A program made the position numbers and the translations under genes. Below, in pieces: positions 1 through 50,793 of a stretch of 64,000 nucleotides of DNA (positions within the stretch are counted from its first letter, which is position 1; each line of letters starts with the position of its first letter). The stretch is from the NCBI GenBank assembly GCA_964035545.1, contig OZ037773.1, positions 3,253,751 through 3,317,750 of the forward strand, read 5' to 3'. The DNA is from Bugula neritina. Taxonomy: Eukaryota; Animalia; Bryozoa. The notes under the pieces are model-generated. The model was not told the DNA's origin. It did no database searches and saw only the letters and a list, made by a program, of their open reading frames with translations.

Positions 1-388
1 ACAAGGCTTTGTTCTTTTCATCATTACTTGAAATCGTGATAGATTGGTGAAATGATGAGTGATTTTATTCTTGTATCCATGTTTCAACAAGTTTGCATTT
101 ACTTTTGATTAAATAAAGTCAGGAAAAACTGCAGCATAATAGTTATTTAAGTTTTCTATTGCATTATATTGTATGAAAAGCTGTTATAGCAGTTGATCAC
201 AGCGATTTAATAGTATTTTATGTGTGCATGTATTTGCTGACTACTCATGTAAAATTTGAGACAATACCATAATAACTCATTGCATAAAAAGTATAATAAA
301 TCCAATAAACTTGTTATAATTATATGCTGTTGAAGTAGAAATTGACTATAATTATAATAATATTCCATAATATCATTTACAACTTCAG

Positions 389-501
389 TAGCAGTGAGTG
401 GCTACAAAATTCCTAGAGCCTACCAGGAATGCAGAGAGAAATGTGCAAAGAAAGGGAAGACAAAATCTTATCTCTATAAAGGGGCTTGTATATGCATCTG
501 A
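389..501 (+). CDS. Mature-peptide exon of a secreted 4-Cys CS-alpha-beta/defensin-like peptide (5' signal exon presumably upstream of the window)
   Basis: Acceptor acttcag|TA (phase 1), then (V)AVSGYKIPRAYQECREKCAKKGKTKSYLYKGACICI*. CxxxC-x14-CxC spacing is identical to the complete gene at 5572-6071; net charge about +7; AATAAA near 626. Confidence 0.75.
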
Positions 502-1591
502 CTGCATATATTATAGGTATATTATAGTGCTTTCACTTTACCAAACTTGTTATTGAATAGAAATGCACTACTTTTGTCATTATTGGGATTCTAATAGTTG
601 TTTTATGAATTTACATGTTAGTATAAATAAATTTGTATGTATATATTTTTATTTTTTCCACAATACAACAAATGATGCATTTAAAACCATTTGTGTTTTG
701 TTTCAAATACAACTTTATTATTATTTCAAAAGATTAGAAGTCATTGATGCGTATTTAGATTTGAGTTGAATTATGATTTTTTTTCTCAATAACTTCAAAT
801 AATTGGTCAATTCAGTGCAGTGTGCAGTGTGCAGATGCACTGTGCAATTTATTTTAATAAATTTCCCTAAAAGAAAAATATATTTGATATAAAAATTTAA
901 ACTTCATTTATATATATAGCTGCAGCTGTATGCAATTTTTAATCAGCAATTAAAAGCAGTCTAAAATATCACAACTTAAAAAGACAAAACGACATTTTCT
1001 TTTATTTAGCAGTTTAATCAGCACTTAACAAGTAATTGCATATTTATGCAAATACTATAAAAAAGTAAATCATGATTTGATATAATATTACTCTTAAATA
1101 CTGCTGTAGCGTACAAGTCTCGAAATAAAATGACACTTGTTCCATACACAGATAATGATAATTCCACATATATAGGGACAAAAGAGAACATATAACTTGT
1201 TGTGTATATATATAAGCAAGAGTTAATAAATTGGCAAAACAAGTATTTCTCTAATAAAATCTGCTGTATCATTACTACAACCCACAGGAGCTGAAGAAAG
1301 GTTTATTTAGTTTTTAGCTAACTCCCTATTAAATATTGAATAAAACAATCTGTAGCAACAAAGCCTGTGACTTTTCTACTATCATAACTTACAAGAAAGT
1401 TTTCAAAAGTTGTTTATATTATTTCCATTTATAAAATTGTACATATATTCATTGAGTATATATAACAATAAGATTGAACATAATATAATAATATATAGCC
1501 TACTGCATAATTTAGTAAACACACTATAAACACTTAATAATGTTGCTCAAATATTCTGACTATATTCTAGAAGGCCTTTTTATAGACTTAG

Positions 1592-1710
1592 TAGCAATGA
1601 CTCATGGCTACTAAATTCCTAAAGCATATATCTCAAATGCAAAGAGAAATACACTATAATATAACAAAGGGTCCTTATATAAAGGTATCTCTGTATATAT
1701 TTATCACTAC
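1592..1710 (+). pseudogene. Decayed tandem duplicate of the 389-501 peptide exon
   Basis: ag|TA GCA ATG ACT CAT GGC TAC TAA ATT CCT AAA GCA TAT aligns to ag|TA GCA GTG AGT GGC TAC AAA ATT CCT AGA GCC TAC. Premature TAA at 1612-1614, a frameshift before TGC AAA GAG AAA, and similar 3' flank (about 1.2 kb duplication period). Confidence 0.75.
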
Positions 1711-2821
1711 ATATGTATATAACTCTTTGACTCTTTACCTAATTTTTTTATATTTTGTAGTTTTATCAGTTTAGTGTTTCTAAAAAAGACTATAAACTCA
1801 TAACTGCTAGTGAATAAATCTGTATGGTGTTTTGTATATGATCTACAATATGACAAGTGATTCTTTTAAAGCATGTTGATTGGTTGGTTTACAGACTTTT
1901 TTTAATGTTTCTAAAATTGCTTGTGTTAGTTAATTTTAGTTAAATTATATGATGACTTTTATTTAAAGAAATTCGCTGCTCATAATGCTAATACAATGAG
2001 AGTTTTCCCCAGCACTCTTTGATGTCTAGATTAGCTGACAGATGCAGTTCATGCATATACCTCTGCATGCTGCTCCACTGAGTAGGATTGCAATCTATGT
2101 AAACTCTTGACATTGAGAAGCAGGTGAGAGAGATGCTAAGCTTTGAGCTGAGAGATGCACTTAAGTATAGAGACTCCTATAGCTGGTACTTTGTATAGAA
2201 TGGCTGAGAGGAAGAAGTAAGATGGCGAGCTGCAAAATAAGAGAGAAATAGAAGAACAGCACGGTAAAGAGCTCATCTTACTTCCCAGGTAATATTCATT
2301 CTTGACCTGAACAGCTTATGATAAATTACATGTATTCAACATTTACTGACCTTAAGCCAACATGCAACTAAATATAAGCTACCATGAGAAATGCTGGAAC
2401 TTTCCTAAGTCTCACTGCATGTATAACACACTGCATGAGCCTGACAAACAGTATTATAGGCAGAGATTACCAATGCCAAAACAAACAGCTACAAACACCT
2501 ATAGCGGCTTCATTGCCAGAGTTAAGGGCATGTAACATGAAGGGCACAGCAAACAAAGGTATTTCAAAAAAGGTTTTTTCAACTACCAATTATATAGTTT
2601 GTTGAATATTGTAGTAGTTTTGTGGGTAGAATACAACTTAAGTGGGGAGCATAACTCCAGTATAGAAAGAACAAGATGAGGTAGTAAGCTTGAGTGTAGA
2701 AATCTTTATTGCTGTATAGGTAGCCAGTGAAAGTGGTCTTTATTCGGTGAGCTCCAGTGGTAGACTGATTCTACCCTGTGAGCTCACTTCCTTTTATACA
2801 GGGAAAAGTCTTTGTTCTCAT

Positions 2822-2932
2822 TCTGTCCGAAAGTTGGAGCCGAAATATCGGAACTCCTTCCGATGTCGGATTCCGACATTGGAATTTATTCCGACTTCCG
2901 GACCCCGACATCGGATTGCATAATCGCATTCT
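2822..2932. repeat. CpG-rich patch of direct and inverted TTCCGA(C)/TCGGA motifs, probably a DNA-transposon subterminal remnant
   Basis: About 10 CCGA/TCGG motifs in 110 bp (e.g. ttccgatgtcggattccgacattggaa) inside CpG-poor DNA. Confidence 0.4.
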
Positions 2933-4300
2933 ATAATTAACATGAAAAATGAATAAAAAATAGACTTACTCTTACATATTACATATTTTTGTTTTGGATT
3001 TCCACTACAATATAACACAAAATATTAATGTTTTGAAGTATGCAATTATTTGTCCATTATAGATAGTCTCAAAGTTAGCACATGAAACATTAATAGCAGA
3101 CTAAAACAGTTTATGTTAATACATTTTTTTAAATTTTCAATCTGATGGTACAACAGCAATCTTTCTGTATTTTTGATAAGAGACTTATAAGAAAGTTAAT
3201 TAAATATTTTTCATTTTTATGTTTTGATTCTTAATTAAAATATTTGCTTAGAAATAAGATATCATGATTGATGTTTCCAAATTTTACATGTAATTTTATA
3301 CATTGCTAATTGGAATTATCTTCTTATTAGATACATGTGTTGTCTTTTTATACTGAATCCAGAGTTATCTTCTCATATGTTGAAGAAGCATAAAACAGGA
3401 ACGTCATGTCACAAGAATATACCAACCAAACTTTTTCTAGTCCTGTTCATTGAGCTGCATATTACTAAGAGAGTAAATATACTCTGTATCATCACATTAT
3501 TTAAGAGATGCACATGGGTAATTGGTCCAATCAAAAAGTTCTTGCTATACTTTATCAGCGCAATATCTTGATCAAAGGAACCATGACTAGCTTTGATACA
3601 ATTCTCTTGAAGCTACTACTATATCTCATGTTTTACCCCGTCCTCTTTACAAATATATCCATTATTTTATATTTCAATTTATTCTTATTTACTGAGATCG
3701 ATATAGCAAGCTTTTATAGCTCTTTCATGTTTAAAATATTTTTATTATAATATCTTTTTTGATGATTTCTGTTGTTCCAGCAAAACCACCTCTGCACCAA
3801 GAAACATCTGAGAATATTTCCATCTCAGCTCTCTACCTCCTGCCTGCTCTATATTGTTCTATAAAAAAATCCCATTTAAAAGAATTTGTCATTTCATTTC
3901 ACATAACGGAAAGGAAAAGAACTTATAAACTGAGTTGCTATAAATGTTAACTATATACATGTTTGTTTGCAATAGATTATAGTTACAAATATATCATCGC
4001 ACAAAAATGTATTTTATATATTGGTATTTTTTTGTTCTTATGCTGTAGGAGAAAAGTATGTATAATATATTTTAAAACTTCTTTCAAAAGCAGAAATTTT
4101 TAAACCTTTGAGAATTATTACTATATAATTATATTTTTATTATTTACTGCAAAGATTAAAATAACAATTGTTAATATTATATGAGGTTAAACTTACAGGC
4201 CAGCTTATAATACCAGATTGATTGAAACTGGTTTTGCTACTTATAAATTTTATGATAAATATAAGCAAATCTTCAATAAGTCAGTTTACTATTGTAAAAT

Positions 4301-4390
4301 AATTTTGCTCCCCCCCCCCCCCACTGGGATTCGAACCCGAGACCTCTGGCTTGCAAGCAAGTGTGCTAAACATTACACCATAGAGATCAC
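4301..4390 (-). mobile_element. tRNA-derived element family A (SINE-like head)
   Basis: Minus strand reads TGGTGTAATGTTTAGCACACTTGCTTGCAAGCCAGAGGTCTCGGGTTCGAATCCCAGTGGGG: A-box, TGC in the anticodon position, B-box GGTTCGAATCC. No acceptor stem. Related copies at 4550-4634, 12545-12580 and 54025-54089. Confidence 0.7.
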
Positions 4391-4549
4391 AGGGTAAACT
4401 CATCATTACAACCATGAATCCTATCATGAATATTATAAGTAGCAAAACATTTTCTATCAAGCTGGTAATATAAGCTGCATGCAGTCTGTAACTTATTCTG
4501 ATGATGTAGTGTTTTGCTAAAGAGACTGTAGAGTGGAGTTTTCCCTGCA

Positions 4550-4634
4550 GTCTCTGTGGTTTATATACTTGTTTACATGCCTGCTTGCAAGCATGAGGTT
4601 TTGAGTTTCGAATCCTAGTGAGAGAAAAGTTTTG
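4550..4634 (+). mobile_element. Degenerate family A tRNA-derived element, inverted relative to 4301-4390
   Basis: tgtggt...ctgcttgcaagcatgaggttttgagtttcgaatcctagtg matches the family A consensus. Confidence 0.55.
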
Positions 4635-5071
4635 CAGTACTGCTGGTACATATTTATACACTGTTTAATGTTGTCAAATTACAACTTGAACTTTTTAGCA
4701 GAACCAATGTTTTCTAATCTTGTAAATGTATTCAACATTAAATTTACACGTGCATTTTTATAAAAAGGGTAGAAAACTTTATTATACATTCAGTTATGCA
4801 TTTATTACTAATATATTTTTACAAATTTAATTATCCATTGCCAGCTAAAAAGAGCACAACTCCTTAATGCTACCAACAAATGTGAACAAATTAATTTTGC
4901 TAAAATTATTGGTGGCAATACTAAGAGTTATGCTCTTTTTTGTTCTGTTAAATTATCTGTATAATACTATCATTGAGTATTGTCTTAGCAGTATTTAAAA
5001 GTGATGTTAGTATCAAAGTGGCAGTTAATTATGCTAGTTATATATGCTGCAAGCCTATCAGTGCTAAATGA

Positions 5072-5180
5072 GGGAGCAGCCGTGGTCTAGGGGTTAGAGC
5101 GTTTGCCTAGTAAACAAGAAGCCACAGGTGTCGAGCCGGATAAAGACCAGTGGTGATGTTAGGAAGAGCATCCAGTCATA
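5072..5180 (+). mobile_element. SINE family B, 3'-truncated copy
   Basis: GGGAGCAGCCGTGGTCTAGGGGTTAGAGCGTTTGCCTAGTAAAC tRNA-like head plus GGTGATGTTAGGAAGAGCATCCAGT body shared with 14076, 23382, 24522 and 33861-34459. Confidence 0.85.
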
Positions 5181-5571
5181 TTAACATTTTTATTCAAAGC
5201 TTCCCATTATTTTCCTATAAGAGAATTATAATTTGGATTCATATTTGCCTTATTTATCAAAACCACTCGAAAGTTGATATAACTTTCCTAAACTAACATG
5301 CTGAAAAATGTATAAAGTAAAGCTGATGTCTTTAACCACACGAATCACTTTTAATCATTTCATTATTAAACAAAGTAATTTTTGTATGAAAAAGCCAACA
5401 TTTTTAACTGCTTCACTGGTTTTATTGTGAAAAACATGACATTTGCATACACATATTATTTAATGGCATATCAATTTATATTAAATTGCTTTCAATTCCA
5501 CACAGTATTACAATATTGTGCAGCGTGCTATACCTAACAAGAGGTGAAGGTCACATTCATGCAGTAGGAAA

Positions 5572-6071
5572 CTATGACACCTTTAATTTCCCTAGACATG
5601 AACAGCGGTGGCCAGAAAGTTTATAACTAGCATATCCGTCTCTACGGCATCTGTTTCTGCAAAGGCTTCGTACACTAGGGCCTGTGGATGCTGTTAAAAA
5701 GTTCACAGAATATTCAAATTATGATTCAGCAACACTTTTGGCAAGTCTTGCATTGTATACAGACTATTTTGTACATTATATGTCCATCTTTGTTTCCTTA
5801 ACTCATAAACATGCAATGTCATCATTACATTTAGTATTGTTAACAGTTTGTGACAGGCTTTGTACAACATGCAATTGAAAACTTATAACATGACGATATA
5901 ATATACTGTCTATTTGATTTCTTAAACTAGTTATTAAATTTATATGATCTATTGAAAATATAAATCTGAATATAATAGACTCAGTCGCATTCATATAACA
6001 TGACATTATTTTAACTTACCCAGTGAACTCAAGGCCATCATGGTAATTAAAAGTAAAGTAAGAACTTTCAT
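5572..6071 (-). CDS. Secreted cationic 4-Cys CS-alpha-beta/defensin-like peptide precursor, 56 aa
   Basis: Exon 6071-6020 MKVLTLLLITMMALSSL, phase-1 intron (G|GTAAGT ... TTTTTAACAG|CA), exon 5690-5572. Product MKVLTLLLITMMALSSLASTGPSVRSLCRNRCRRDGYASYKLSGHRCSCLGKLKVS*. Signal peptide, CxxxC-x14-CxC, mature net charge about +8. Confidence 0.85.
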
Positions 6072-6268
6072 ATTTCATAGGTTCCTATAAAAATTACACC
6101 CAGTAAGTTCTCTTGCTTGCTGAAAACTTTGAATAATTATGTAGACAAAAAAGTACTCCTTTACATTTTTGTAGACCAAGTTGTTCTGTTAAATGAGTTT
6201 ACACTTATTTGTTCTACGTTTACAATATAGACAAGTACCATAGCTAGAAATATGCTAGCTAGACATTA

Positions 6269-6623
6269 ATAAAAGCTATTCAGCATTTATAAACTTATTT
6301 AACTATAACCCAATGTACGTACGTGTGCATGTACATATATGTGTATATATGTACAAATTGTACATACATGCATACGTACGTACATTGAGTTATAGTATAG
6401 ATATATACACACACACACACACCCACACACACACCCACACGCACACACACACATACACACACATACACACATACACACATACACACATACACACATACAC
6501 ACATACACACATACACACATACACACATACACACATACACACATACACACATACACATATATACACACACATATATACACACATATATTGGGTTATAGTT
6601 TAGCTATGCTGAATAGCTTTTAT
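6269..6623. repeat. Fold-back/MITE-like element enclosing a (CA)/(TACACACA) microsatellite, in the 5'-UTR intron of the peptide gene
   Basis: Inverted arms ataaaagctattcagcat (6269-6286 / 6606-6623) and aactataacccaat (6301-6314 / 6587-6600); extra internal hairpin 6301-6396. Confidence 0.7.
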
Positions 6624-6730
6624 ACTATACCATATCATATTTATATTATAAATTATATATATTTGTGTAACAAATATTATAAATGGAACTATTAATATAA
6701 GCCAATGAATGAAAAGGCATGTAAATCCTC

Positions 6731-6819
6731 ACCTTCTTTATAACTTGCCGCAGTTAATGCATGTACAGGGGCCTCTGTAGTGAATCAACGCCTCTGCAAA
6801 TATACGCTTCTTATATATA
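6731..6819 (-). promoter_or_regulatory. Putative TATA promoter and non-coding first exon of the 5572-6071 peptide gene
   Basis: Minus strand TATATAAG (6810-6817), Inr-like TTCACT about 30-35 nt downstream, donor AAG|GTGAGG near 6732, acceptor TTTTATAG just before the ATG exon (about 6085). Confidence 0.55.
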
Positions 6820-7528
6820 GTTTTTAAACTGCAGGGCATTGCACGGAGCTAACTAGCTTTATATTGCTATGGTATATGTTTAAACAGAATATTAATGTAA
6901 TGTCAAATAATTGTAAAAAAAATAGGTTTGTTGACTAATCTCTATAATATATGATGTAGTAAACTATAATGTGCACGATGCCTTTTATGGAGAATATTAG
7001 GATGTCATAGACAGTGATGCAGCTGTGTGGGGTGAAGCAGGGTCTCATTGCTATATTATAGTCAAGATGTCTAACTTCACCAGTCTGTAATAGACAACAT
7101 CCCAATATAATCTCAATGTATTACAAGATAATACTTAATTAAAGAGTGTTACTTAATAATGTGTGTTATATGGTGGCAAACACCTGAGTTGAAATGCTTC
7201 GACTGGTGCAGAAAAATCGGAAGTTTATTATAAATGATATTTTCATAAAATCAAAGTGAAGATACCCATATTCAAAGCTAACTCATCTGGGCTTGATTTT
7301 CCTGGCTGAAAAATTCTTCACCAAATGTTGCAAAAGTTTTTGCATTCTATCATGAATTAGGCTGTGCTTTTAATTTAAATTACTTTTAGTCAAAAATTTA
7401 ATTTGGTCAAGTTAAAAAGTCATTTGAGTTGCCTACATCATGAACACAACAGCACACAACTATATCGTCTGTGATGACTTTCTCTGCATAAAGTTAGAAT
7501 GCTGTCAAATGAAGCAATTCCTTTGTAG

Positions 7529-7630
7529 ATTTCATTAGTGCGGAGTAGTTTAGAGCATGCAGAGTGCAGAGTGGTGTGATGGAGAGGTTATCATATATGT
7601 GGCTTGGTGCAGATGTGGTAGTGTAACTTG
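7529..7630 (+). pseudogene. Possible decayed member of the 4-Cys peptide family
   Basis: Phase-1 acceptor ctttgtag|AT, then DFISAE*FRACRVQSGVMERLSYMWLG, frameshift, CRCGSV. Keeps the SY-x3-G and CxC motifs; second Cys position is AGT. Confidence 0.4.
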
Positions 7631-8009
7631 CATAAAAATATTCTGTAAAACAATTAAAATATCTACAGTTATAGTACACTGACAGTTATTTTACTTGCAT
7701 ATGCTTTCAACAAATACATATAGGACTTATATAACCAGATCATTTTAAAGCTATAATATGGGTTCAGAGTAGTTGTTTGTAGTGTGTAACTGGCGTTTGC
7801 AGAATATAACATAGTACTGTTGAGAATAGCTTGGGCTTTATTATTATATGAAAAGTTCGTTTAAAATAACACTAAATTCTAGCCTGCGTATGCAAATTTA
7901 AATATGATTGATAGAACCAAACATATCTCATTGTGCAGGGTTTGGGGTCATTATCTCTATGAGAACCCTCCTCTTCCCAAGGAGGTAATAACTTCTTCAA
8001 TATCATGGT

Positions 8010-8128
8010 GAATGAGCAATTGTGACTGCAGAATACCCTTTTTAATATCACCAGCGGCCTTTACTAGAAATTGAACCTTTTATATACTAAATCAGTGCTT
8101 AAACCACTAGACCAAACAGTTGCTCTCC
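8010..8128 (-). mobile_element. SINE family B, old degenerate copy
   Basis: Reverse complement ggagagcaactgtttggtctagtggtttaagc...aaaggccgctggtgat...cagtcacaattgctc matches family B. Confidence 0.6.
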
Positions 8129-9924
8129 ATAAAACTTAAATACCTTATATAAAAATGAACAAAAATAAACTATTACCATTTGTTGTAACAAACATGGAAG
8201 CTATTACCTAGAAAATAAATTTCATAGCATACAAATCATGCAATGAGCTCTTCATTAACCCAACTCGTATGTACATGCGACAACATGAAGTCTCCTGCCA
8301 TCCTTGAGCCGCTCTCTTGTGAAAGATGTCTGATGCTTCCATCTATCTAAAGAGTTATCTGATCATGAAACTTAAAAAAATTAGTTTCACAGTTCTGTTG
8401 ACAGAAGCTGAAAGTTGTATCACCGAAAATTAAGACAGTGGAACCGGAAATTAAATCATAAAGACTACGAGAGAATGAAAGTAACTTTAATTTTTGGCCG
8501 AATATAGCTTTTTTCTTTTTACAAAGCAGCAGTTATCATGAGTCATACCAAAGTATAGATATATTTTATATGTCTGTTGCTAGCTTTCAAGTAACTGACT
8601 TCTGAAATATGAATTCACTGGAGAACATGTGCATAGTCCAACTGTTGGTCGTCGATGTAAAAGAAATGCAAGAACACATATGCCACTGGGTGTGTTTTAT
8701 TATGGAGGGATCTAAATTTCAAACCAATTTAATACTCATAGATGTCCTCTCAATACAACAGTGGAAAATCCACAAGTTCCTCTAGAATGCAGCTAATGTC
8801 TGAACAAGCTCATGCATAACTGAAAATATAAAAGCAATAAAGTTAAGTGTCCAACTAATACAAACTTATTATAGAAAGTTTCCTGCACATACAATGACAA
8901 AAACTTGATGGATAAATAGAATACTTTGGTATCTCGATTATTACATGTAATATTTTGATATATTACCATCAGAATAAATAAATACAAACAATATTATGCA
9001 TCAACTGTAATTTAAATATACACTGTATATATACTAACTGGCTACAGCTCTATACTTACATCTATTTCCTTACTAACTTAAATTAATAATTGAGAGAATA
9101 TAGCTGATGGGAATTATTAGACTTACCTAATATTATGGTGAAAGGATATAGCATTGTATGAAAGAGCATGGCGCAGTGTGCTTCTGGATATGATTAGCAA
9201 GATTCAATTGTCGAAGAAAGTTATAGAAATATTATAATCAAAACACAAAGTATGATACTAAGATAAGCAGAGATACTCACTATAGAATTGATGCAGATTA
9301 AAACATAGAAGCATCCGGATTCTGAGGCAAAATGAATTAAACTATACACAAAGTCACCATGACATGATGTCATTCTTATAATTGTCTGATGAATGTCACA
9401 TGACTTACATATTCCCTACCTAAAACATCAGTAAGTTACAAGATAATACTATTATATAAATCAATTCATTGTTTTAATAAAAATTTTCACAGTACTATAT
9501 ATTATAGTTACAATCTAAACTGCATGTTTTTAATATGGTTATTATTAACTCAATTTTGTTGCCCTGAATTATTGAAAATATTTATAGTTTAAACTGCTAA
9601 TTAAAAATACTCATTGGAAATGCTGTCTTAGCTTTTTGGAAATATTGCCTTTCTACTTGATGATTCTATCTCTGCTTGCAGAATGCAAGCAGTCAACTAG
9701 AAGCACCCACAGGCTTCAGGGGGTAGATCATGGGCTGTTTTCATGATGTATACAGAATAAAATTGTAGGTGATTCTGCTATACTTTATAGACTTATATTA
9801 TACTAACTTTGCGAACTATATTGCACTTGTATGTATAATGAAAACTTGGGTTTTCACATAAATAAATCAGCATTAATTTTGATCAGAATGTTTCAAAACA
9901 TAAAGTAATGATAACTCCCAAAAT

Positions 9925-11555: not shown

Positions 11556-13278
11556 CTCACAGTTGATGCTTAAATTAAAAGTTGAATTAACTAAATGTAA
11601 ACATAATGATATTTATATCTGCTCAATTTGATTTAATGAAATATAAGTCACTGCTGAAGTTTAATAAGTTTGATATTGAATTTTAAATCAATGCTTGGCT
11701 TGATAGTAGCGTCCATAATCGTAATGATAATCAAAACAAATAGTAATATTTTTGAGTAGTGCTGGTACCAATACACCACTGAGAGTGATTTGAACCCTCA
11801 AGTACTCAACTTCATTGCTCTAGGTTAATATATTCTAAATTATAAATTTTTATTATAGAAAACCTATCTGATATTATCTTTATGCGAAATGTTAAATGCT
11901 TAAATTCACTCACTGACTTTTATTATACCAGTGTGACTGTATAAATGTCTTAGAGTTTGTAGGCATAATCACGGACTTTTTATTAATAGAAACAAGTATC
12001 AAATCCAAGCATGACTGGACTTAATTTTCATTTCATGACATGAAGTGGCTGGGTCAGCCAATGAATTGAGTTTACTGGCTTACAGTAACCGCATTCTAAT
12101 TCCTAGATTAACATGGCAGCTAGTTCGCTGAATTAGATATGTTCGTTTAGCATCTAGTTTAAACATTGGTAAATTGTTATCACAACAACCAATTTCAAGA
12201 TGAGCTGGAAGTAAACACTCAACATCTGTTGGTGAAAGCTATAAACTTGTGCAAGCTTGTATGTGTATAATGAGAGCTATATAGTTAAACAGCTCTTTTC
12301 CTTAGTGACAAAGTTTTTGTTCAATATCAAATCTCATTTTAGTTATTCACTCCCTGCATTATACTTTCATGAATCACAATTTATTTTTCATTTTTTTCTT
12401 CTACTAATTGCAAACAAAAAAGCAACAAATCCAGTTTTGGCTGGCTAAAGTGAGGTGCTTGGCAAGGAGTTCGGGCTCTCAACTCCCTAGGAGTACTACT
12501 ACTATTCTACTTCACTAAAGGCCGGAATAACATGTTAAATACATAATTGTCCCACTGGGATTCCAAACCGAGACCTCTTGTAGGCGACACTACAATCCAG
12601 TTTAATTGTCAAAGCAGCTTGTGGTGACCGCAATCTAAAGCAAGTGTTTCATAATTTATAATTGTTTTATTGTAAAGAAGAAATAAATAGGTTGATTTTA
12701 AGTTGAGTATCATAGCATTTAAATGGTAAAACTATATGATAAAATCATTAAATTTTACATAGAAATCGGTTATAAATCCTATTCACTGTGCGTAGACAAG
12801 CCATTGCATTGAACTTTTAGTCATTTGAGCTTGTACTTAAGTTTCAAGTTCTGCCGGCAAGTCTGAGGATGATATCACCGTTGATAGCAAAAATCCCCTT
12901 TGTTCGAGGGGAATTCCCTTCTTAGCTCTTTGCGATGGCAAGCCTGTATTATATTGCAGTGATAGATTGGTTAACCGCTTTAACCACTGAGTATTCCCAT
13001 CAAGTTGTCACATTATAACCATTATAATAATCAGACCGAGTGAAACTTCTCTTACCTGCCGGGAGTGTAAGAGGGGCTCATTATTCCTGTTCAACATTTT
13101 AATCATAGAACTTGATTATCTGTTGAAGTTGTCTTACTTTTATTGCAATATTCAGCTTAATTTGGGATTGCCATTCCTGGTTTAAATTACATCAGCTTTA
13201 AATTCATTTTGCTCATTGTTTCATTGATTTTTCAAATTAGACTCAAGTATATTTTGCCTTCACTATAATTTGAATAGC

Positions 13279-16200
13279 ATGGCTCCCACGAGTACTAACG
13301 CTGTCCTCACTGTGTTGACGTTGACATCCATCCTATCTTCTACGGTCCTAGCAGAGGGTGCAACAGGTTGGTACCTCTAATGATTATTGTCTATCATTTA
13401 GCCATTCATTACCTACAGCCTGTAAGTGAACTTCGTTTGACTACTGTTGTTTTTTGCTTGCTAGACTGTGTTTCAAAGTCTCTCTCGGGCAGTGAAGGCA
13501 ACATCACCCTGAATTACGATAAAGCAGACGAAAATGCAACATGCTACTTATTTCAGTGAGTTTCCTACTCTTTCTTCTAACTCAACAAAATTTATAATCT
13601 AGTTTTTATATTTATAGTAAACTGTATCAGCATTTATTGATTCGTTTTCAAGGTTATATGTTTTGTTGTTTTAGCATTGATAATAATCAATACAGGTACT
13701 TGTCTAGCTGGTACAGGTGCTTGTCTAGCTGGTACAGGTGCTTGTCTAGCTAGTACAAGTACTTGTCTAGCTGGAACAGGTGCTTGTCTAGCTGGTACAG
13801 GTGCTTGTCTAGCTGGAACAGGTACTTGTTTAGCTGGTACAGGTACTTGTTTAGCTGGTACAAGTGCCTGGCTAGTAGAACTTACATTGTGGCAAGCTGC
13901 TGGCTCATGCAGACAAAAAGTTTTCAAAATATTTTCATCAGATTTTCTATAGGTTAACAAACATAAACAATAAGGTAATAATTTGTAAAAAAACTACAGA
14001 TCTTCATTCAACTGAGATCAAGAAATTTCCTTAATATAATTAAGTTTATTTGGATTACTTTCTGGTTTATTCAAGGGGAGCAGTCATGGTCTAGGGGTAA
14101 AAGCAGTTGCTTAGTAAAAACATGTCATGGGTTTGAGCCCTGACAAAGGCTTTTGGTGATGTTAAAAAGAGCATATAGTCATAATTGCTCCTGTGCCTCA
14201 TCTGAATGAGTCCTTGGCCCAATTTACCAAAAATCCTTTTCACCAGGGGTTTCTCACGGGGATGGTAGCTATAAACTTGCGTGAGTGATTTTTTTATTCA
14301 AGTGTCTAGCAGAAGTTGTGTTGTAGTATGTCCTCAGTGAATTCCTTGCTATTTCTCTCCGTCCTGCCTGATCTTAGCAGCAGCAAAGTCTCTAGCATCA
14401 CAGTATACAACGTCAACTCTACTGGCGGTATCGCTGTCGTGTCTAATCGCACTTTCGAAGCTAGTACAGGTAGGTGGTTTCAAGTGTGTTCTTGTTACAT
14501 AATAACTTGTGACTCAGTTGGTTACAAACTTGCTTGTTCCTTTACGTACAGCATCGTTTGCTCTAATTAAATTTTAAAATGTTGACTGGAAGCACCTACT
14601 GTGTTGTAACTTGTGCCAAAAATTATGAATGGATTGCATACAAATTTGTATTTTTTCTTAGGTTTTGACTATATTAAATGCAGATTTTGAAAAAAATTAC
14701 TCATTTTGCAAACCTCGGCTAAGGCTGTTTCCCTGCCATAGCTTTTAGCAGTGTGTCTGCTGCTCTTTATGCAGAAAGTTATTGTGAAAGGTATTGAGGT
14801 TGGTTATAGTGGTGTAGGTGTTGTAATAGTTGTACACTTTAATTTCTTTCTCTCTCTCCCTCTCTCTCTCTCTCTCCGTTTCGAGTGACAGTAAAGACAA
14901 TGTTCTTTGTTCCAGTCGACCCGTACATGGTTGTTGGATTTGGCCGAGATGCAAACGAAACTGAGGAGGTCATCAGGGTTGAGGTGAGACTCAGTGAAAG
15001 CCTGGCTGACAATGCTACCGTTTTCATAGCAACCTATAATAACGAGAGTGAGTAACTTCTCTGTTTCTATGATATTAAAACTGAATACTGGTACTCCTAT
15101 ATTTATGGCATATTTTGATATTTGCATAGTTTATATCATACTGTAATAAAACATGTTATGATCTACATAGCAACATACATACTGACTATAGCAACCTGCA
15201 CTGTTTCCATAGCAACACATATACTGACTATAGCAACCTGCACTGTTTCCATAGCAGTACATAAACTGTTTATAGCAACCTGCACTGTTTCCATAGCAAC
15301 ATTTATCAACAGACATTTTGACACCTGCATTTAGTTAATGAATAAACAAGTCCGAAAAATAAATGCATTCTCTATTATATATTTTTCTCAGTGAAGGTAG
15401 TAATTTACTGCAAAAAGTAGCCAACTTTATAGTGAATGAATGAAGAAGCAATCCATATCGTAAAATAAATACATTAGCTGCTATGCAGACCTAAATAACT
15501 TTATTAAATGCTAAATATTGCACCTATAAGTCTAAAGTGTGAATTCTGGTACATATTTCAAGTCACCTGAGAATTGTTACCTCCGCGAAATCTTCTTTGA
15601 GACTTGTGTTACCTTCTTCTGAGTCCGATTGATAAGGTTGAAGTTGCTGTTAATGTCCAACAGATAAATTGATCTTGCAGCTACTAACTGCGATATTTTG
15701 TAAAGCTAGTCGAGTTCTATTGCCGTATTCACAGCCTGTAAGTTGGACTACCCAAGCGTGCCGTCCATGATTAAGAACCCTGACTACGAGATGGGAAGCA
15801 ACGCTAACATGACCTTCGTGTGTGAGCTTGCTGTCACCAAGATTAAGGATGCCTCGTCTGTCACCTCTTTTGTCTTCACTCAGTTCATGTTCAGTGAGCC
15901 GTCTTTTCTGAGAGTCAACACCACTCGATCTGGTATATAATACATTACACCCTGTATATAATATACTACACTCTGTATATAATACATTACACCCTGTATA
16001 TAATATACTACACTCTGTATATAATACATTACACCCTGTATATAATATACTACACTCTGTATATAATATATTACACTCTGTATATAATATATTACACTCT
16101 GTATATAATATACTACACTCTGTATATAATATATTACACTCTGTATATAATACATTACACCCTGTATATAATATATTACACTGTATATAATATATTACAC

Positions 16201-19200
16201 TCTGTATATAATACATTACACTCTGTATATAATATATTACACTCTGTATATAATATATTACACTCTGTATATAATATAATACGCTCTATATATAATATAT
16301 TACACTCTGTATATAATATATTACGCTCTATATATAATATATTACACTCTGTATATAATATATTACACTCTGTATATAATACATATGATTCTGAAAACCA
16401 TATAATCTGTTTGACAGACCAATACACTGGCTCTGAGCTGCCACCAGATGTCATTGCAAGACACGAACTTTTTCTGGAGATGCAGATCAGTTTACAGAGT
16501 TCTGACCAGTTCACTTTGTCCATGACGTCATCAACTAAAGGTGTGCTGCTTAATCTGTTGACAATGTATATAAATAGCAACGAAAAGTGTATATAAATAG
16601 AAATGATGGCGAGGTTTATAAAGGGAAAAGCTGAGTTTCAAGTCGAATTCTTATGCGTCTATTATCCTAGCTATCTGAAAATTTGGTACGAAATAAGATC
16701 AAATATATTATTTGTTTTTGTCAATAGTGATAATTCAGCTGTAGTGGTGGACTGAAGGATGTAGGGTTCCATTTGTGTGCAATTATGGTTGAACATAGTT
16801 TAACAATAAACGATCATATTGAATTGAAGAGTGTGGCTATAACTGATGATAGTTCCTTCCTAATCGTGAAGTTTTATTTTATGGATGGAGCACAAAAGTT
16901 TTATTTCAGTGAGTAGGTAGATGTTGCAACACCCAATTGCAATGTTCTATGAAGTTTGGTTTGAGTAAGTTGAAAAGACTCAGCTTTACAAATGTCCGCC
17001 CATTTCCCGTTTTCTTGTTGAGATGGGAACTCTGAAATAACTTTTTGGAGTAAAGAAAATGGAGCATGGTTTAAATAGAACGTAACTTAGAAAATAGTTC
17101 AAGTCTTTACAGCTTTAAGTTCAACTCCTTCTAATCTACCTTGTAGCACAATCATATTTCTAGTACTACAGTCTGTGTGCCTTTTGTATACCCCACAATA
17201 TTGGCTACCAATATGTTATATTTTATCATAGCTATAATTTGAAACCTGTTACCTCTTTTTCAGCTTGGAATTGTTTTAATGGATCCCATGTTCTATTAGT
17301 GTTCTGAAGAAACTGCTGTCAACTTTGCTTGCTATTTCACAACTTTCATCAACTCTCTCATTTTAGCCTAACATCTTATTTACCACATTAATATTGATTT
17401 TTCTCAGACAGAACACAGTGCTGCCTGCTCATGTTATTTTTGTTTGTTGATTTAGTACTAATTAGAATATAATGCTGCTGCCGTTCTTTATATAAGTGTG
17501 TTTATTCATGCCGTCAGCAGTCTACTTCTTTCATTGTGGGGTACACAATAGACACTTCTGTGTGTTATACTAAATACATACACATATTATACTCATGATC
17601 TGAGCAAGGTAAGTGCAGTAGTGGAGAAATTGGGAAAAGCCTCTGTTCTAGATCAGAAATATAGCATGAGAAGTTATGTTCTCGCGAGAATTTCAACCAA
17701 CGCCCCAAAGCAAAATTTAATAGTAAAATTAATGACCTTAGGTTATCTCAATTTCTCCAATGCTGCTCCTAAACTGGTTTAACTGGGTTCAGCATTGCAT
17801 GGTAACTGGTTGATATAATTATTTCTGCAGATTGCACCAAGTATGTGAGTGTGACGTCAGACGGGACAAATGTCACCAGCCCCAGTTATCCGTCTGCTTA
17901 CGACAACAACCTCTTCTGTAAACTCATGCTCATGTCTGCTGATAACAAGTATGTATTTTATAGCTGGTCTTCTTTAAATTGTAGTAGCCTAAGCACTCCA
18001 TATTTTCTTGAAAAATTGTGGTTTGCTTTGAAACTCCCTGCTAAATAACTTTTCCTCAACTTCTAATCTAAAACACAGACTATTTTGAATTTCTCTGTTA
18101 CTGTACTGGCTTCCCTCTGGATTGCTCTATAAGCAGCTCCTAGTTGGGGGTGATTTGGGTTCCAAATTCTAATTTATACCCCATACTCAACTCCAAACTT
18201 GAGAACTCAACTACTGCACCCAATCACCCCCCCCCCAACTCGTAGCTGCTCATGGAACAATTCTTCTCACTTCTCAGTCTTGTGTGTTGCCGAGTTAATG
18301 GTTCTTTCTGTAAATCTAATTACTGTGTTTTGATTATCTCGACATGTTTTTACAATTGTACTTTGCCTTATTTTTACTCTTTCTACTCTCTGCTGTCATC
18401 TAGCTCTTTGTGTGCCTTCCAGGCAGTAGTCAAAGTAGTAATGTCTACACTGTCAAGCTACGCTCACCAATATACTTGCAAATGTATAGTTTTGCATATT
18501 GCATTCATACAGTACTCAGTGTGCTCTTAGATAATAGATTTAATTTTGCTGATGCACGTGTCATTTTGTTGGGTATTCAGTAAATTTCAGACCTTGACAA
18601 TTAATTTAGAATTTTTAGTTCCTATAATATTGAAAAGAGCATCATATATATAAATTAATAAAATATAGTATGAAGAAATCAATGGATTATTCTATAAGCA
18701 GCCCTGAGTTAGGGGTGGCTGAGTGCAATAGTTAGGGGTTCTCCAGTTTAAAGTAGGGGTTTATTGAAAATCCCCACTCCAGCCTTTGTTACATTTATTT
18801 TACATTATGTTGTTTTGCACAGACCTCTTCAACTGACAGTCACCAAAATTGATTTGGCTAAAGATAATGACAAAGTAGAGGTTGTTGATGGGGGAGCTAG
18901 TAGAGCAAGTGGTAGAATCATAGCAACCCTGTCTGCTTTGGATAATTATAAAGACAAAGGTTTGTTTCCTCACATCTGAGACAGAGCTATTTGGTTAATA
19001 AATTAGTTACCATTCAAATCGCTTGGTTAAGAAATACTGACCAATCAACAAATCGGGTTGCAAGCATACAATCATGAATTTCTCTGATATATCCTTTATG
19101 AAACAACTTTATCAGACTGGAATTCTTTTTTGGATTTGTCAGGCTCCATGTTTAGTATTTCTGTTGTAAAGTTATACAGCCACATGATAATGCATGAATT

Positions 19201-22200
19201 TGTTATTTGTTAACCCTTCACAGTTCCAGACAACAAAGTTCGAAAATTTTACAATTTACATTTTACAATATTTTAAATAAATATAGCAGCTGCTTTTAAA
19301 AAAGTTTATGAATCGTATTCAACTCAGTCGTATATGTATTCTGACTTTGAGCTTTTGTTGCCAACCCTGTGTTGCCTCTTGTACCATCTCAACAGAGACG
19401 TGTTTATCTTCTGGTAGATGCTGTGCTGGTGAGCAGTGGGCCGGTGGTAATGGTAAGGTTCACCACAGACGATTTGGGTACGGCTAGTGGGTTCATCTTG
19501 GTGGCTTCAGAAATAGGTGAGGTTTTCGCCCCATTGTCATGGCTTAGAAATATGCAAATGGATGTTTCTATGGATGAGTTTGTGGTTGAGGTTTGCTGAA
19601 CTTATGGTTGTGATTTCACTAACTGCTACTGTTGACTGACATCAAATGATAAATTCATTAGCATAATGTTTTCTGTGCTGTTTACTTTGTTCACACTATC
19701 TCTAGTATAACGTTGTTGACTTGCTGAGTTATTTATATACCAAACATTAATATGCTATTAATACATGATATGATTTGTGATTCATCCCTATGTTATGTAT
19801 AAATGCTTTATAGTTATAATTAGAGTCATTCTTTCTATGCTGTACACTTTATACCTTGCAATAATAAACCTTACCATACATTATTCTAATGGTCTCATCT
19901 AAATAATTATTAATGCAAACATAAAAAAAAACATTATACCATCTAGTCATGATGATTCTTTGATTATATATATTATAATATTTATTCTTTTGACTATAGA
20001 GCTTGCAATGCTTCTTTCATTTTCAAAGCAATGTTCTCTTTTTTAGATGAGGGCGGTCGTTTCTACGTTCCCTCTAAAATCCAGTTCCCGGCTGCAAATA
20101 CCACTGTTGCCGGGCCCGTGAACCTAGTGCTGCAAGCTCCTGATGAGCAGATGGTGTGTAGAATATTACGTGTATCTATTTGTTGTCATAGCAACCGCGT
20201 CATGTGATCACTTAATCATAGACTTCAAACCTGTTCTATTTTCCAACCATCTTGTTTCACCAGTAAACCCATGTGGGTATATATTTCTTTCTTTGAACTC
20301 ATCCTGTTTGTTATCAAGTAATGTCTTTGTATGTTTAAGTACTGACTTGTTGCATCAAGTACTAACTCATACACATTCAAGTACTTACTGCAGGTGAAGC
20401 TCTCGCTGGAAAAAGCTATTACTAAAGATGATGCCACAATGAAGTGTTATGATGGAGACAGCACCAGCTCACCTGTCATTGCTCAGTACAGGTACATTAT
20501 ATACGTTATAGTATGGGTGTCTTGTGTCAAAACAACTGTTCTGCTTTATACTTGATAACATGTATGCTGTGCGGTGCTGTACTGTGTGTGCTGTGCGGTG
20601 CTGTACTGTGTGTCTGTGCAGTGCTGTACTGTGAAGTGCTGTACTGTGTGTCTGTGCTGCAGGTGCGTGTGGGGTGTCTGTGTGTAGAATATAATGCATG
20701 GACACCTAATATAAAGTATAGCATTGATCTATATAGTTTGAAATATAATATGGTCCATTTATTGAATGATTTGACTTGTAAATGGCATGTAAAGCTCAAC
20801 AAATTTCAAGATATTGCTTCAAGTACTAAATTTGAGTTGTTGAGAATATAACTCCAAATTTAGAACCGCATTTGCAGTTATACTATTATTTGTTACAGTA
20901 AGCAGTTTGATTTGTATCCCGTCTTCTCGTCTAAGGACAAGATGTTGTGCGTGGCCAGTGGCGTAGGCAACTCCACACTATTCATTGCTGCTGACAGCGT
21001 CACCGACGGTGAGTACGTCTGTTCACTTGCCAGCTCATTTCCTGTAACTACTGCAGATGATATTTTGAAGTTCCTATATAGCAAAGTATCTCTTCTAAGG
21101 AAAATTTAATGCTGAAATACAATTATGTTGCTGGACGGCGTAGAATTCATTGCATTGTAACACTAATGGATTGTAACTGTAGAGCTCATTGCATTGTAAC
21201 AGTAGTGTCATATCGTAGGTCAAGGCAAATTCTCCAGCTCCGCTATTGACAGTCTCAGTCTGAATCTGCCGGTGAAAGAAGCAGGGGAAGCCGACTACCA
21301 GTTCAATTGGATTGTTCAGCCCGAAGTGAATACCTCGGTCTATGACGGTAATGTGGATAATGTTACTATACTCACCTTATTATTATTGTACTTACTATAG
21401 TATTAATACACTTACCTTAATATTAATATACTTACCTTGATATTACTATACTTGCTTTAAAATTACATTTATATCTGTAGCAACACATTTATATCTATAG
21501 TAACACGTGTATATATCTGTAGCTACACATGTATATCTGTAGTAATACGTGTGTGTCTGTAGCGACACATGTAGACATGTTATTGTGTGTTCACAGTAAT
21601 CCAGCTGGTCATCACGGAAGTAGATTTCCCCGACACCGACTCTGAGATCTCCATGAAAGTGCAGACTATGAACTCAGTTAATCTCGTCAACATCACCAGA
21701 GACTCTGTGTTTCCCCTGAAACTTCGTTCTGTTGTCACTGCAGGACTCAGGTGTGTTCTAGAAATCCAGTTCTGTGATGTGTGGAAGTTGTCCCTTTTTC
21801 TGTCAATAGAAACTGTAAAATTTATTGAATAACTTTGGAATGTGAAGACTGGTAAAGGCTTGTCCAGAATTATTAGTTGCAATTCTCAAATAAGCAGTTG
21901 GTTACATCACTACAGCAACTAGCACCTTTGATAACTCCTCAGTCTTTTTTGTAGGTAAAATGTATCCAATACTTGTTTTACACAATCTATATTACTGCTC
22001 TTTGTTTCAGATTGCTGATAGACATAAAACCATCAAATACTTTTGTGACTGCCGGTGGTCAGAAACCCAGCCTATTAGTCACTGCGGATTACTCTGTAGA
22101 GAAGAGTAAAGTGGATATTGCCGGCCCTACCTCGTCCTCTGGTTCCGTTATGTCCCCTTTCTACCCTGAAGGTGAGGGACAGCTACCACATTCTCTATTT

Positions 22201-25200
22201 CTTTACAAGGTTTTGCTGTGAAATACGAATCTTGGTTAATTCTTTTTCAGTCTGTGATAATTTTTTTGTTATTGGTTTATGAGAAATCAGATTTCTATTC
22301 ACTTTTGCTATAGTTAATAAACATTGTCGGAGATAGATAGGCTGCTTAAATTAAATTTTTCAACTGGAAATAAAACAGATTTTGTACACCAAGTGGCTTA
22401 TCCATGCTTATAGAGGCTTATGGAAAGCTATTGAGGCTCTATTGCTATTCTACGTAGGTATGTTTATAGACAAATTTGATTTCCTGTAGTCATTCTAGAA
22501 TTTTCTCTGTCCAAGACTTTAGTGGTATGTTACATCATTCTACTCTCTATTCCTATGAGCTGTTCTAGCATCTGTGATTAGTAGTTAGTTTTTGGAGTTG
22601 TCGGCTTATATATCGGCAATGGCTAAACAATTTATTAAAATAGTCATGGGTTCAAAACTGATTTTTCTACTTGATTCAGCAACAACAACTTACATGAATT
22701 AGAAAGAACCATGAATCCGAAGCTATGTCTTTAAAAATTAAACTATTTTTAATGTATAAGAGTTGCCTTCTCTCACTAATTGAGACCATATATATCAATA
22801 GCATTGTACTTGTAAAAATATTTATTAAAATGATGTCATCAACAGTGTTAAAATTTCAAGACTATTGCATTATGCAAAATTATATTAATTAGTTTCAGGA
22901 ATCATTCTATAAGCAGCTCTGGGTTAGCGGTGACTGAGTGAAATAGTTTAGGATCTTTAAGTTTGGAGTTTAGGGTTCCAACTTAACCCCTAAACTCGAG
23001 AATTCTAAATTACTGCATGTAGTCACTTGGAGCTGCTTTTAGAATGGTTCTATTTTCAACATTAATTGCCTGAATCTATATCATTATAGTGACTAAAATA
23101 TAACCTAAGGCTAGCTTACAGCATTCCTTTGTGTCAACTGCTAGGTTCTCCACTGTACACGGACAGCACCTGGATGTTCACTGTGGAGGCCAACAACTCC
23201 TTACAGCTCTCCTTCTCCTCCATCTTCAGCCTTCCTCTCTCGTCACAACTCAACATAACACAGCAGGGGGGTGGCAGCAGTGACGTCTCGTACACCGGTT
23301 TGTTTTCACAAGGCATTGGCTAAAGAGTTTCTCATCAGAGAGATTAGTGTTTTGTATAAGTTATATGTGTGTGTGTGTGTAAGAGCGGCAGTGGTCTAGA
23401 GGTTAGAGCGTTTGCTTAGTAAACACCAAGTGGTGGGTTTAAACCCCAGACAAAGGCCATTGGTGATGTTAGAAAGAGCATCTAGTTATAATTGCGCCTG
23501 TATCCCATCTGAATATGTCCTTAGCCCAATTTAATAAAAACCCTTTCCACCAGGGGCTTGGTGGCAGCGATGGCAACTATATACTTGCATGAGTTTATGT
23601 GTGTGCGCGTGTGTGTATTGCGGTAGTATATTTATGGAGGTACTACATTGGTTGTCTCATTCTTCTATTTTTATAAAATTATGTTTTTTATGCTAATACT
23701 TTCTCATAAAGCTTTGACGTTCAATGGTAGCTTCTTCATTGCTACAGTAAAGAACTTCTGGTGAATTGTATAGCTAGTTATACCTCCTGCAGGTCCAATG
23801 CCTGCTGCACCATCTGATCTGGTTATCAACAACACCAAGGGAAATGAGTCCATCACAGTCACTGTTCATCTCATCACTGGTTCCAGAGATTCTTCCAAGG
23901 TGGAGATAACTTACACTTTCCTAGGTCAGTTTTCCAGTAGCTGTACAGATTTACCTGTTAAGAAAGTTGGTCCTGTGCTCTGGTGAATTAATCAGCTGAG
24001 TTATGGGTTCACTTGTTGATTTTTAGTCTCGGGAGGTAGAGAACGATAGTTACTACTCTTAGGACTCTGTGTGATTGAATGAGTTAATACTGTACCTTCA
24101 CATATGGTACTCATGCTCAGTATTATTATATATATTCAGTGTGCACATCAGCAAACTGTAGTTTCAAATATGTGATGCCTCACATAATTGTCGCTTTTGC
24201 CACTCGGCTTTGGGGCCACAGGCTTGGTGTAAAAGCGAGTGTTGCCATTTTTGCTCAATGTCTTTCTTCCATGGGAAAAATTATCCCGATATTTTCTGTA
24301 TCTCAGAAATACTTTGTGGGGGTAGGTACAGTAATAGAAACATTGAGAAAAGCCTGTGTTTTTGATTAAAAATGCAACAACAAAAGTCATGTTCTAGAGA
24401 GAATTTCAACCCTTGCCCCAAACTCGCATTTACTAAGGAAATTCGTCAACGTAGACTATCTCAATTTTTCACTACTGCACCTAAACACCTTGTGCTCCCC
24501 TCTTTGTGTGCGGCTATAACTAGGGATCGGCCATGGTGTAAGGGTTAGAGCGTTTGACTAGCAAACAAGAAGTCATGGCTTTGAGCCCAGACGAAGGCCA
24601 TTGGTGATGTTAGGAAGAGCATCCAGTTATAATTGCTCCTGTGCCTCATCTTAATAAGTCCTTAGCCGATTTAACACAAAAAAACCCTCCCATCAGGGGT
24701 TTTCTCACAAGGATAGTGACTATAAACTTGCGTGAGTGAATTTTTTGTGCGCGGCTATAACTTATCATTAATTGACATGGCTCCATGTTTAGATGCTGGA
24801 TACAGCGGACTGCTGGGTAAGGTACCCCAAGAACTTATTGTGACGCAGCAGGTGGAGGACAGCTATGCTGCCACCTGGATACTCACCACACCTAAAACCA
24901 ACAGCGTTGGTCAGCTGCAGAGAATCAACCTGGCTGTCACTTTTGATAAATCCAACACTACAGTGTAAGTGTGCTCTCTTTTATTATTTATTCTTGGCAC
25001 ATGTCACCACCTGTTGGCACATGCCACCACCTGTTCTTAAAGTCACCCACTCATTGCTGTACTAACTGATGTTTTATGAATTCACAGGCTAGAGCTGAGA
25101 GATGGAGCCAATGCATTCTCACCTTTTATACCTTCTCCTAAAACTCCTTACGAGAAATATTCTGTGACCACCAACTCCAACCAACTGTTTGTCAGTTACC

Positions 25201-42465: not shown

Positions 42466-50793
<8,328 letters not shown>

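Follow-up and report, generated by a model that had tools for sequence, protein, structure and literature searches.

A small cluster of genes for secreted, cationic four-cysteine peptides is predicted in the first 6 kb of a 64,000-nucleotide (nt) stretch of the genome of the bryozoan Bugula neritina (GenBank assembly GCA_964035545.1, contig OZ037773.1, positions 3,253,751 to 3,317,750 of the forward strand), hereafter called the window. The cluster would consist of gene A, a dead duplicate of A, and a complete two-exon gene B, placed tail to tail and belonging to a lineage-restricted family. Gene B would be translated into a 56-residue precursor, which after removal of the signal peptide at the predicted cleavage site would leave the 38-residue mature peptide encoded by exon 2. 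The predicted fold is an alpha-helix bearing CxxxC, followed by a beta-hairpin with CxC on its last strand. Two disulfides, with an expected pairing of 1-3 and 2-4, would pin the helix to that last strand. The result would be the core of a CS-alpha-beta peptide (CS, cysteine-stabilized) that lacks the third bridge, Cys1-Cys4, of canonical defensins. Such peptides would act extracellularly, with microbial membranes or the surface proteins of other cells as their targets. As a whole, comprising the genes, the fold, and an extracellular effector role, this explanation is held with moderate confidence. Taken by its parts, A and B are very probably real coding genes and the fold is likely to be as predicted, and we are much less sure of any particular activity than of either of these.

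Two four-cysteine peptide genes in the first 6 kb of the window

An earlier note on this DNA had reported two short frames at 389-501 (+) and 5690-5572 (-), both encoding the pattern CxxxC-x14-CxC. Both frames are present, and they give the only two matches to the pattern in all six frames of the 64 kb. In simulations that used the dinucleotide transitions of the window (first-order Markov), the mean number of matches was 0.08, and two or more were obtained in 0.5% of the runs. The peptide of A has 36 amino acids (391-498, +) and that of B has 38 (5575-5688, -), each followed by a stop codon. The two frames are preceded by acceptor AG dinucleotides at 387-388 and 5692-5691, respectively, and in each case two split-codon bases follow the AG. 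The stop lies one codon past CxC in exon A and seven codons past CxC in exon B. Net charges of about +7 and +8 for the mature peptides (36 to 38 residues), also given in the earlier note, follow directly from the translations.

For gene B, the previously proposed phase-1 junction between 6020 and 5690 is borne out by the gene model. An exon at 6071-6020 (-) supplies a start codon and 17 signal-like codons and ends in the donor G|GTAAGT. Its product has a basic N terminus, a 12-residue hydrophobic core, and small residues at positions -3 and -1; the signal-peptide call was made from these classic sequence features alone. In the gene model, the join yields a 56-residue precursor with a 38-residue mature peptide, and the unspliced reading in the window runs into a stop four codons into the intron. 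B has the gene plan of a secreted peptide, with a signal exon, a phase-1 intron, and an exon for the mature peptide.

For gene A, a phase-1 acceptor is the visible part of the upstream structure. A scan of window positions 1-388 gave no signal-like exon, and the upstream exon is not present in the window. The claim that such an acceptor ends the signal region in both genes is borne out for B only; the secretion of A would follow by analogy with B. Exact look-ups of three open reading frames (ORFs) near the window start, aimed at sequence upstream of position 1, found none on record, and a search with the ORF at 563-766 returned solely the orthologous contig L001 described below. The features of the cluster are listed in Table 1.

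Table 1 Features of the peptide gene cluster (window coordinates; UTR, untranslated region)
Feature	Position	Strand	Description
Gene A, terminal coding exon	389..501	+	Split codon, 36 codons, and stop; cationic four-cysteine peptide
Gene A, conserved 3' block (putative 3' UTR)	546..719	+	AATAAA at 626-631; aligns with the blocks behind B and the decayed copy
Decayed tandem duplicate of the A terminal exon and 3' block (pseudogene)	1553..1870	+	Several frameshifting indels, at least one premature stop, some cysteine codons lost
Gene B, conserved 3' block (putative 3' UTR)	5369..5541	-	Candidate poly(A) signals ATTAAA at 5464-5459 and AATAAA at 5426-5421
Gene B, exon 2	5572..5690	-	Split codon, 38 codons, and stop; cationic four-cysteine mature peptide
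Gene B, intron	5691..6019	-	329 nt, phase 1, GTAAGT to TTTTAACAG
Gene B, exon 1 (coding part)	6020..6071	-	Start codon, 17 signal-like codons, first base of the split codon

Orthologous contigs and an unspliced database entry

All searches and fold predictions were made exon by exon. When a profile of A and B was compared with 1.84 billion representative proteins, with no length filter, a single true match was obtained, a protein of 166 residues (P0001; E value, 1.1e-14). Two other candidates from the same search, P0002 and P0003, were rejected as repeat proteins and chance matches. P0001 is a B orthologue read from exon 1 through the translated intron into exon 2, in a frame in which the intron happens to stay open in contig L001; its middle part is not conserved as a frame in the window. 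Judged by this make-up, P0001 is the unspliced read-through of an ORF caller on short holobiont contigs, an annotation artefact that hides the 56-residue precursor. It is the sole entry in the protein collections searched, in which no proper gene product was found for these peptides. Scans of metagenomes with the alignment of A and B, each peptide placed first in turn, returned 402 pattern matches each, none of which was confirmed. Together, the protein and metagenome searches found no sequence relatives outside Bugula.

P0001 is encoded on three contigs, at 285-785 of L001, 376-876 of L002, and 378-878 of L003. L001 is the 4,054-nt Logan contig SRR4020083_2183 from run SRR4020083. L002 and L003 are JGI metagenome scaffolds with the prefix AY690838, an accession that belongs to the mitochondrial genome of B. 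neritina. L001 spans the whole cluster and carries the orthologues of A, the decayed copy, and B on one contig. According to the B. neritina genome paper, the symbiont project released its Illumina reads of the holobiont in 2016 under SRP081292 (PMC7576161). B. neritina is a complex of the cryptic species S, D, and N (PMC11480708). The non-coding DNA of the window and of L001 differs by approximately 8 to 12%, and L001 would represent either a different member of the B. neritina complex or a divergent haplotype.

Conservation of the coding sequences

The orthologue of exon A is located at 3634-3746 (-) of L001. The two sequences differ at 10 of 111 nt, and eight of these ten differences fall at third codon positions (P = 0.0034). 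There are two residue changes, both conservative, and the cysteines, the stop, and the acceptor are all intact. Expressed as nonsynonymous (dN) and synonymous (dS) divergence, the values are 0.024 and 0.50, respectively, for a ratio (omega) of about 0.05. Both other frames of the exon contain stops, and most of the changes between A and L001 would alter residues if read in them. This comparison, the strongest single piece of evidence, indicates that the frame of exon A is translated and constrained. The dS of exon A (0.50, from eight changes) exceeds severalfold the divergence seen in the non-coding DNA around it (about 0.10), and that of gene B is just 0.05. The high value may reflect small-number noise, a transition bias at third positions, or differing histories of A and B.

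For gene B, the comparison with L001, L002, and L003 shows 2 differences over the 52 nt of exon 1 and 3 over the 119 nt of exon 2, and no indels. The intron differs from that of L001 at 36 of 326 nt and has seven additional gap columns (approximately 11%). Likewise, the 208 bases upstream of B show 26 differences and 26 gap columns against L001, and the 3' block has diverged by 7.9%. The difference between the exons (5/171) and the intron is significant (Fisher's exact test, P = 0.0017), as is that between the exons and all flanking non-coding sequence (86/806; P = 0.0007). The donor, acceptor, start, and stop are all kept in the orthologue, whereas an upstream out-of-frame ATG is not. Approximately 330 nt upstream of the B start, a (ATACACAC)n microsatellite is present at 6405-6585, and L001, L002, and L003 carry a longer (CA)n in the same place.

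Paralogy, shared 3' blocks, and a decayed copy

The A and B peptides are identical at 8 of 29 aligned residues (28%), all four cysteines among them. The coding DNA of the same block has 44% identity (dN, 0.95; dS, 1.57, which is saturated). A G...SY-x3-G motif, which the earlier note took to be common to both peptides, is shifted by one residue between A and B when the peptides are lined up on their four cysteines, and it is not conserved column by column. Behind the stop codons, 118 of 167 bases (71%) are identical between the 3' blocks at 546-719 and 5541-5369, with an alignment score of 40 compared to 12.5 ± 1.9 for shuffled sequences. The common block holds the candidate poly(A) signals, which argues that these are terminal exons sharing a 3' UTR. 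On this sequence evidence, A, B, and the third copy described next are paralogous terminal exons with a common, putative 3' UTR.

Three decayed copies had been put forward, and one of them stands. Window positions 351-685 match 1553-1870 at an E value of 1e-14, and exon A aligns with this copy, around position 1592, at a z score of 11.6 over shuffles. No signal-like exon was found before it. The proposed copies at 7529 and 8346 were dropped, as their similarity to either exon, on both strands, is no better than that of shuffled sequence (z ≤ 1.3). In L001, the orthologue of the copy around 1592 (2465-2624) is decayed too. The copy is dead in both lineages, and its decay therefore predates their split. 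Along the first 6 kb, A and its dead duplicate lie in tandem, and B is opposed to them tail to tail.

Purifying selection on A, the conserved exons of B, the common 3' block, and the dead member uphold the earlier view of a lineage-restricted family subject to birth and death. The family appears to be young and small, and its one dead member fits such turnover. Within 6 kb, the cluster would offer a compact case of birth-and-death evolution, with a conserved gene, a second gene that changes faster, and a dead copy.

Two further fragments in the window resemble the family in part. At 28410-28363 (-), 10 of 17 residues are identical to the first half of A, including CxxxC (E value in the window, 0.019); this fragment has no CxC, no acceptor, and no support at the DNA level, and it may be an old piece of the family or a chance match. 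A CxC-like tail closes the ORF at 6839-6738 (-), which has a DNA-level z score of 2.9 (P of about 0.03) and is without the common 3' block.

Predicted fold

The six cysteines of the defensin framework are arranged as Cys1...Cys2-X3-Cys3...Cys4...Cys5-X1-Cys6 (PMC5234102). Two helix-to-strand bridges, Cys2-Cys5 and Cys3-Cys6, form the defensin core, and Cys1-Cys4 is the third bridge (PMC5234102, PMC10040121). A and B each have exactly four cysteines, and the equivalents of Cys1 and Cys4 are absent.

Structures of both peptides were predicted with AlphaFold on single sequences, without an alignment, and the models were compared with the PDB using Foldseek (threshold E value, 0.001). For B, the model has a mean predicted local distance difference test score (pLDDT) of 86.2, with a helix at residues 4-17 (carrying Cys10 and Cys14) and strands at 19-25 and 28-34 (the latter with Cys29 and Cys31). 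The model of A has a mean pLDDT of 83.8, a helix at 9-21 (Cys14 and Cys18), and strands at 26-29 and 32-35 (Cys33 and Cys35 in the latter). In both predicted models, CxxxC is part of the helix and CxC lies in the last strand of an antiparallel hairpin.

CS-alpha-beta peptides lead both Foldseek lists, with a root-mean-square deviation (rmsd) of 0.7 to 1.4 Å over approximately 25 residues. The nearest solved folds across the two lists include cobatoxin, BmBKTx1, tamapin, scyllatoxin, insect defensins, nasonin-1, drosomycin, and a plant defensin. The combination of AlphaFold and Foldseek, which the earlier note had suggested as a check, came out in its favor as to the helix followed by a hairpin and failed to give a significant match, all E values being at least 0.49. 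At 36 to 38 residues, the lack of a significant Foldseek E value is usual. That the peptides behave like CS-alpha-beta peptides is reasonably supported as a prediction.

Weighing of the evidence

Several observations weigh against the explanation given at the outset. Some concern the genes. The gene models are known here from the DNA sequence alone, and the first exon of A is found neither in the window nor in L001. The comparison of orthologues covers one other lineage only. The dN and dS of B (0.024 and 0.052, from five changes) are uninformative. A word-indexed search of 5.8 billion protein clusters, queried with the open frames of B (44 codons) and A (46 codons), did not find the spliced precursor. 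Others concern the fold. No PDB match reached an E value of 0.001 or below, the best being 0.49 and 1.4 for the two models. Pfam has no family for either peptide at E values up to 10. Among the sequences of solved structures, searched with each peptide and with the profile, nothing significant was found, the plant defensin PDF1.1 appearing at an E value of 2.4 only; matches to LapB in this search were set aside as chance hits to a metal-binding CxxC region. Each model was built from a single sequence, and AlphaFold may have been drawn to this fold by the cysteine motif itself. Finally, function is read wholly from charge, size, and predicted fold.

The alternative that survives best accepts the genes as real and secreted and denies that their products are CS-alpha-beta effectors. 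The peptides would instead be signalling molecules, similar to hormones or neuropeptides, or would adopt some other two-disulfide fold or pairing. We regard this as possible, though clearly the less probable account. Although there is no sequence link to defensins or toxins, and the Foldseek matches to models built without an alignment are non-significant, two sequences with 28% identity independently led to the same helix-plus-hairpin at pLDDT values of 84 to 86. A signalling role could be hinted at by the end of B, where Gly-Lys is followed by four residues absent from A; processing or amidation might take place here, as it does in regulatory peptides. However, both peptides carry a high positive charge, and their mature parts diverge fast compared to the conserved flank, features that are seen more typically in defence peptides and toxins than in hormones. 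In addition, the CxxxC...CxC spacing fits the core framework (PMC5234102).

That a larger protein ends in one or both of these exons, and that the short peptides are an artefact of reading a single exon, is quite improbable, even though the upstream exon of A is unseen and the sole database protein containing the B peptide has 166 residues. That entry is the read-through on short Logan and JGI contigs, with a middle part that is not conserved as a frame in the window, and B comes with a start codon, a signal-like exon, a consensus donor, and a stop of its own. The earlier note had named membership in a larger protein as a case that would speak against its proposal; among the 1.84 billion representatives, no other carrier of the peptides was found. 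It is scarcely credible that the frames encode nothing and arose by chance, or are relics that died recently, in intergenic DNA rich in AT: the gene models come from the DNA sequence alone, few other genes and many insertions are present in the region, and the dead copy around 1592 shows that the family does decay, but against this stand, in A, the bias towards third positions and an omega of 0.05, B exons that are about four times better conserved than the intron and free of indels, conserved splice sites, and a pattern enriched over expectation (2 versus 0.08).

Comparison with known peptide families

On the preferred reading, in which A and B encode extracellular effectors with a CS-alpha-beta core, invertebrate CS-alpha-beta defensins are the obvious systems for comparison. 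The nasonins of Nasonia vitripennis are encoded with a signal peptide and a phase-1 intron and without a propeptide, and nasonin-1 has three disulfides (PMC2853521). Like nasonins and other such defensins, A and B are small, cationic peptides with predicted secretion and no propeptide, encoded in clustered, duplicated genes. They share the phase-1 intron after the signal region, which is established here for the gene model of B; in A, only the acceptor of this gene plan is visible. The placement of CxxxC on the helix and CxC on the last strand is also common to both, in A and B according to the predicted models. For peptide A, the closest solved folds include nasonin-1 (2koz, 2kp0), with an rmsd of 0.8 to 0.9 Å over 25 residues. 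In contrast, nasonin-1 and canonical defensins have three or four disulfides, whereas A and B have four cysteines only, and no sequence similarity between the two groups can be detected. Descent from six-cysteine defensins, as implied by the earlier note, is not supported by the Pfam, solved-structure, and Foldseek results above.

The best structural neighbours of both models are scorpion short-chain K+ toxins, including cobatoxin (1pjv), BmBKTx1 (1r1g, 3e8y), tamapin, and scyllatoxin/leiurotoxin (1scy), at an rmsd of 0.7 to 1.4 Å over 25 to 28 residues and with all E values at or above 0.49. These toxins are similar to A and B in length and charge. Unlike the four-cysteine peptides A and B, natural scorpion K+ toxins, including the alpha-KTx group, have three or four disulfides; alpha-KTx toxins also carry a surface on the hairpin that blocks the channel. 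Bugula neritina is not known to have a venom apparatus. A leiurotoxin engineered to have two disulfides reportedly retains both fold and activity (Zhu et al. 2002, reference 61 in PMC3509699).

A different kind of likeness is seen with hypervariable families of cysteine-rich secreted peptides, such as the MgCRP-I peptides of Mytilus (PMC4558851) and the nodule-specific cysteine-rich peptides of legumes (PMC7230169). Like A and B, they combine a conserved flank with a diverged mature peptide that keeps only its cysteines, and they are lineage-restricted with birth-and-death turnover. As with B. neritina, the legume peptides occur in a host that keeps a bacterial symbiont. However, both groups have other cysteine frameworks and no sequence similarity to A and B, and the likeness is one of evolutionary mode, not of family membership.

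Possible role and significance

Judged by their charge, their size, and the fold predicted for them, these peptides most likely serve to defend the host against microbes, with ion-channel block and control of the symbiont as alternatives. Bugula neritina depends on a defensive bacterial symbiont, and legumes and aphids use cysteine-rich peptides on theirs. Cationic peptides secreted by the host would be candidates for how B. neritina polices this partnership. A bolder proposal is that Bryozoa hold a natural, minimal CS-alpha-beta family with two core disulfides only, which arose or was stripped down in the Bugula lineage and with which the colony manages its microbes, possibly including the bryostatin-producing, vertically transmitted symbiont. 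We consider this proposal a long shot.

If the fold prediction is true, the peptides would be a natural case of a helix-on-hairpin scaffold kept by its two core disulfides, for which the searched literature otherwise offers only the engineered toxin. No natural two-disulfide CS-alpha-beta member surfaced in the literature searched, nor did any bryozoan family of gene-encoded defensin-like, defence, or toxin-like peptides; the coverage of these searches was incomplete, and both results are an absence of evidence. Invertebrate genomes commonly encode secreted peptides that are rich in cysteine and specific to one lineage, so we find this family interesting rather than startling.

Surroundings of the cluster

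The window is AT-rich (approximately 32% G+C) and contains short exons, microsatellites, and tRNA-like repeats. The calpain and receptor exons described below mark it as animal DNA. Three segments within the cluster, at 1882-2996, 3869-4810, and approximately 4935-5028, are absent from L001 and therefore represent insertions or deletions specific to a lineage. An inverted repeat of 17 nt lies in the first, at 2859-2915, and a tRNA-like element in the second, at 4316-4387. This element, on the minus strand, reaches the Rfam tRNA threshold (29.8 bits) with no ARAGORN gene call. It and a second tRNA-like sequence at approximately 5075-5170 (+) are probably heads of tRNA-derived short interspersed nuclear elements.

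Further downstream, a long multi-exon gene extends over approximately 13000-27000 (+), interrupted by 21-nt minisatellites at 13691-13890 and 15933-16381. By eye, ORF fragments of this gene resemble CUB and LDL-receptor class A modules. A Pfam search with three other ORFs of this region gave no match. Two neighbouring genes are unrelated to the peptides. One is represented by a weak rhodopsin-family receptor exon at 42466-42792 (+) (7tm_1; E value, 0.0045, below the Pfam cut-off), and the other by an exon for a calpain catalytic domain at 57292-57567 (+) (PF00648; E value, 1.9e-6).

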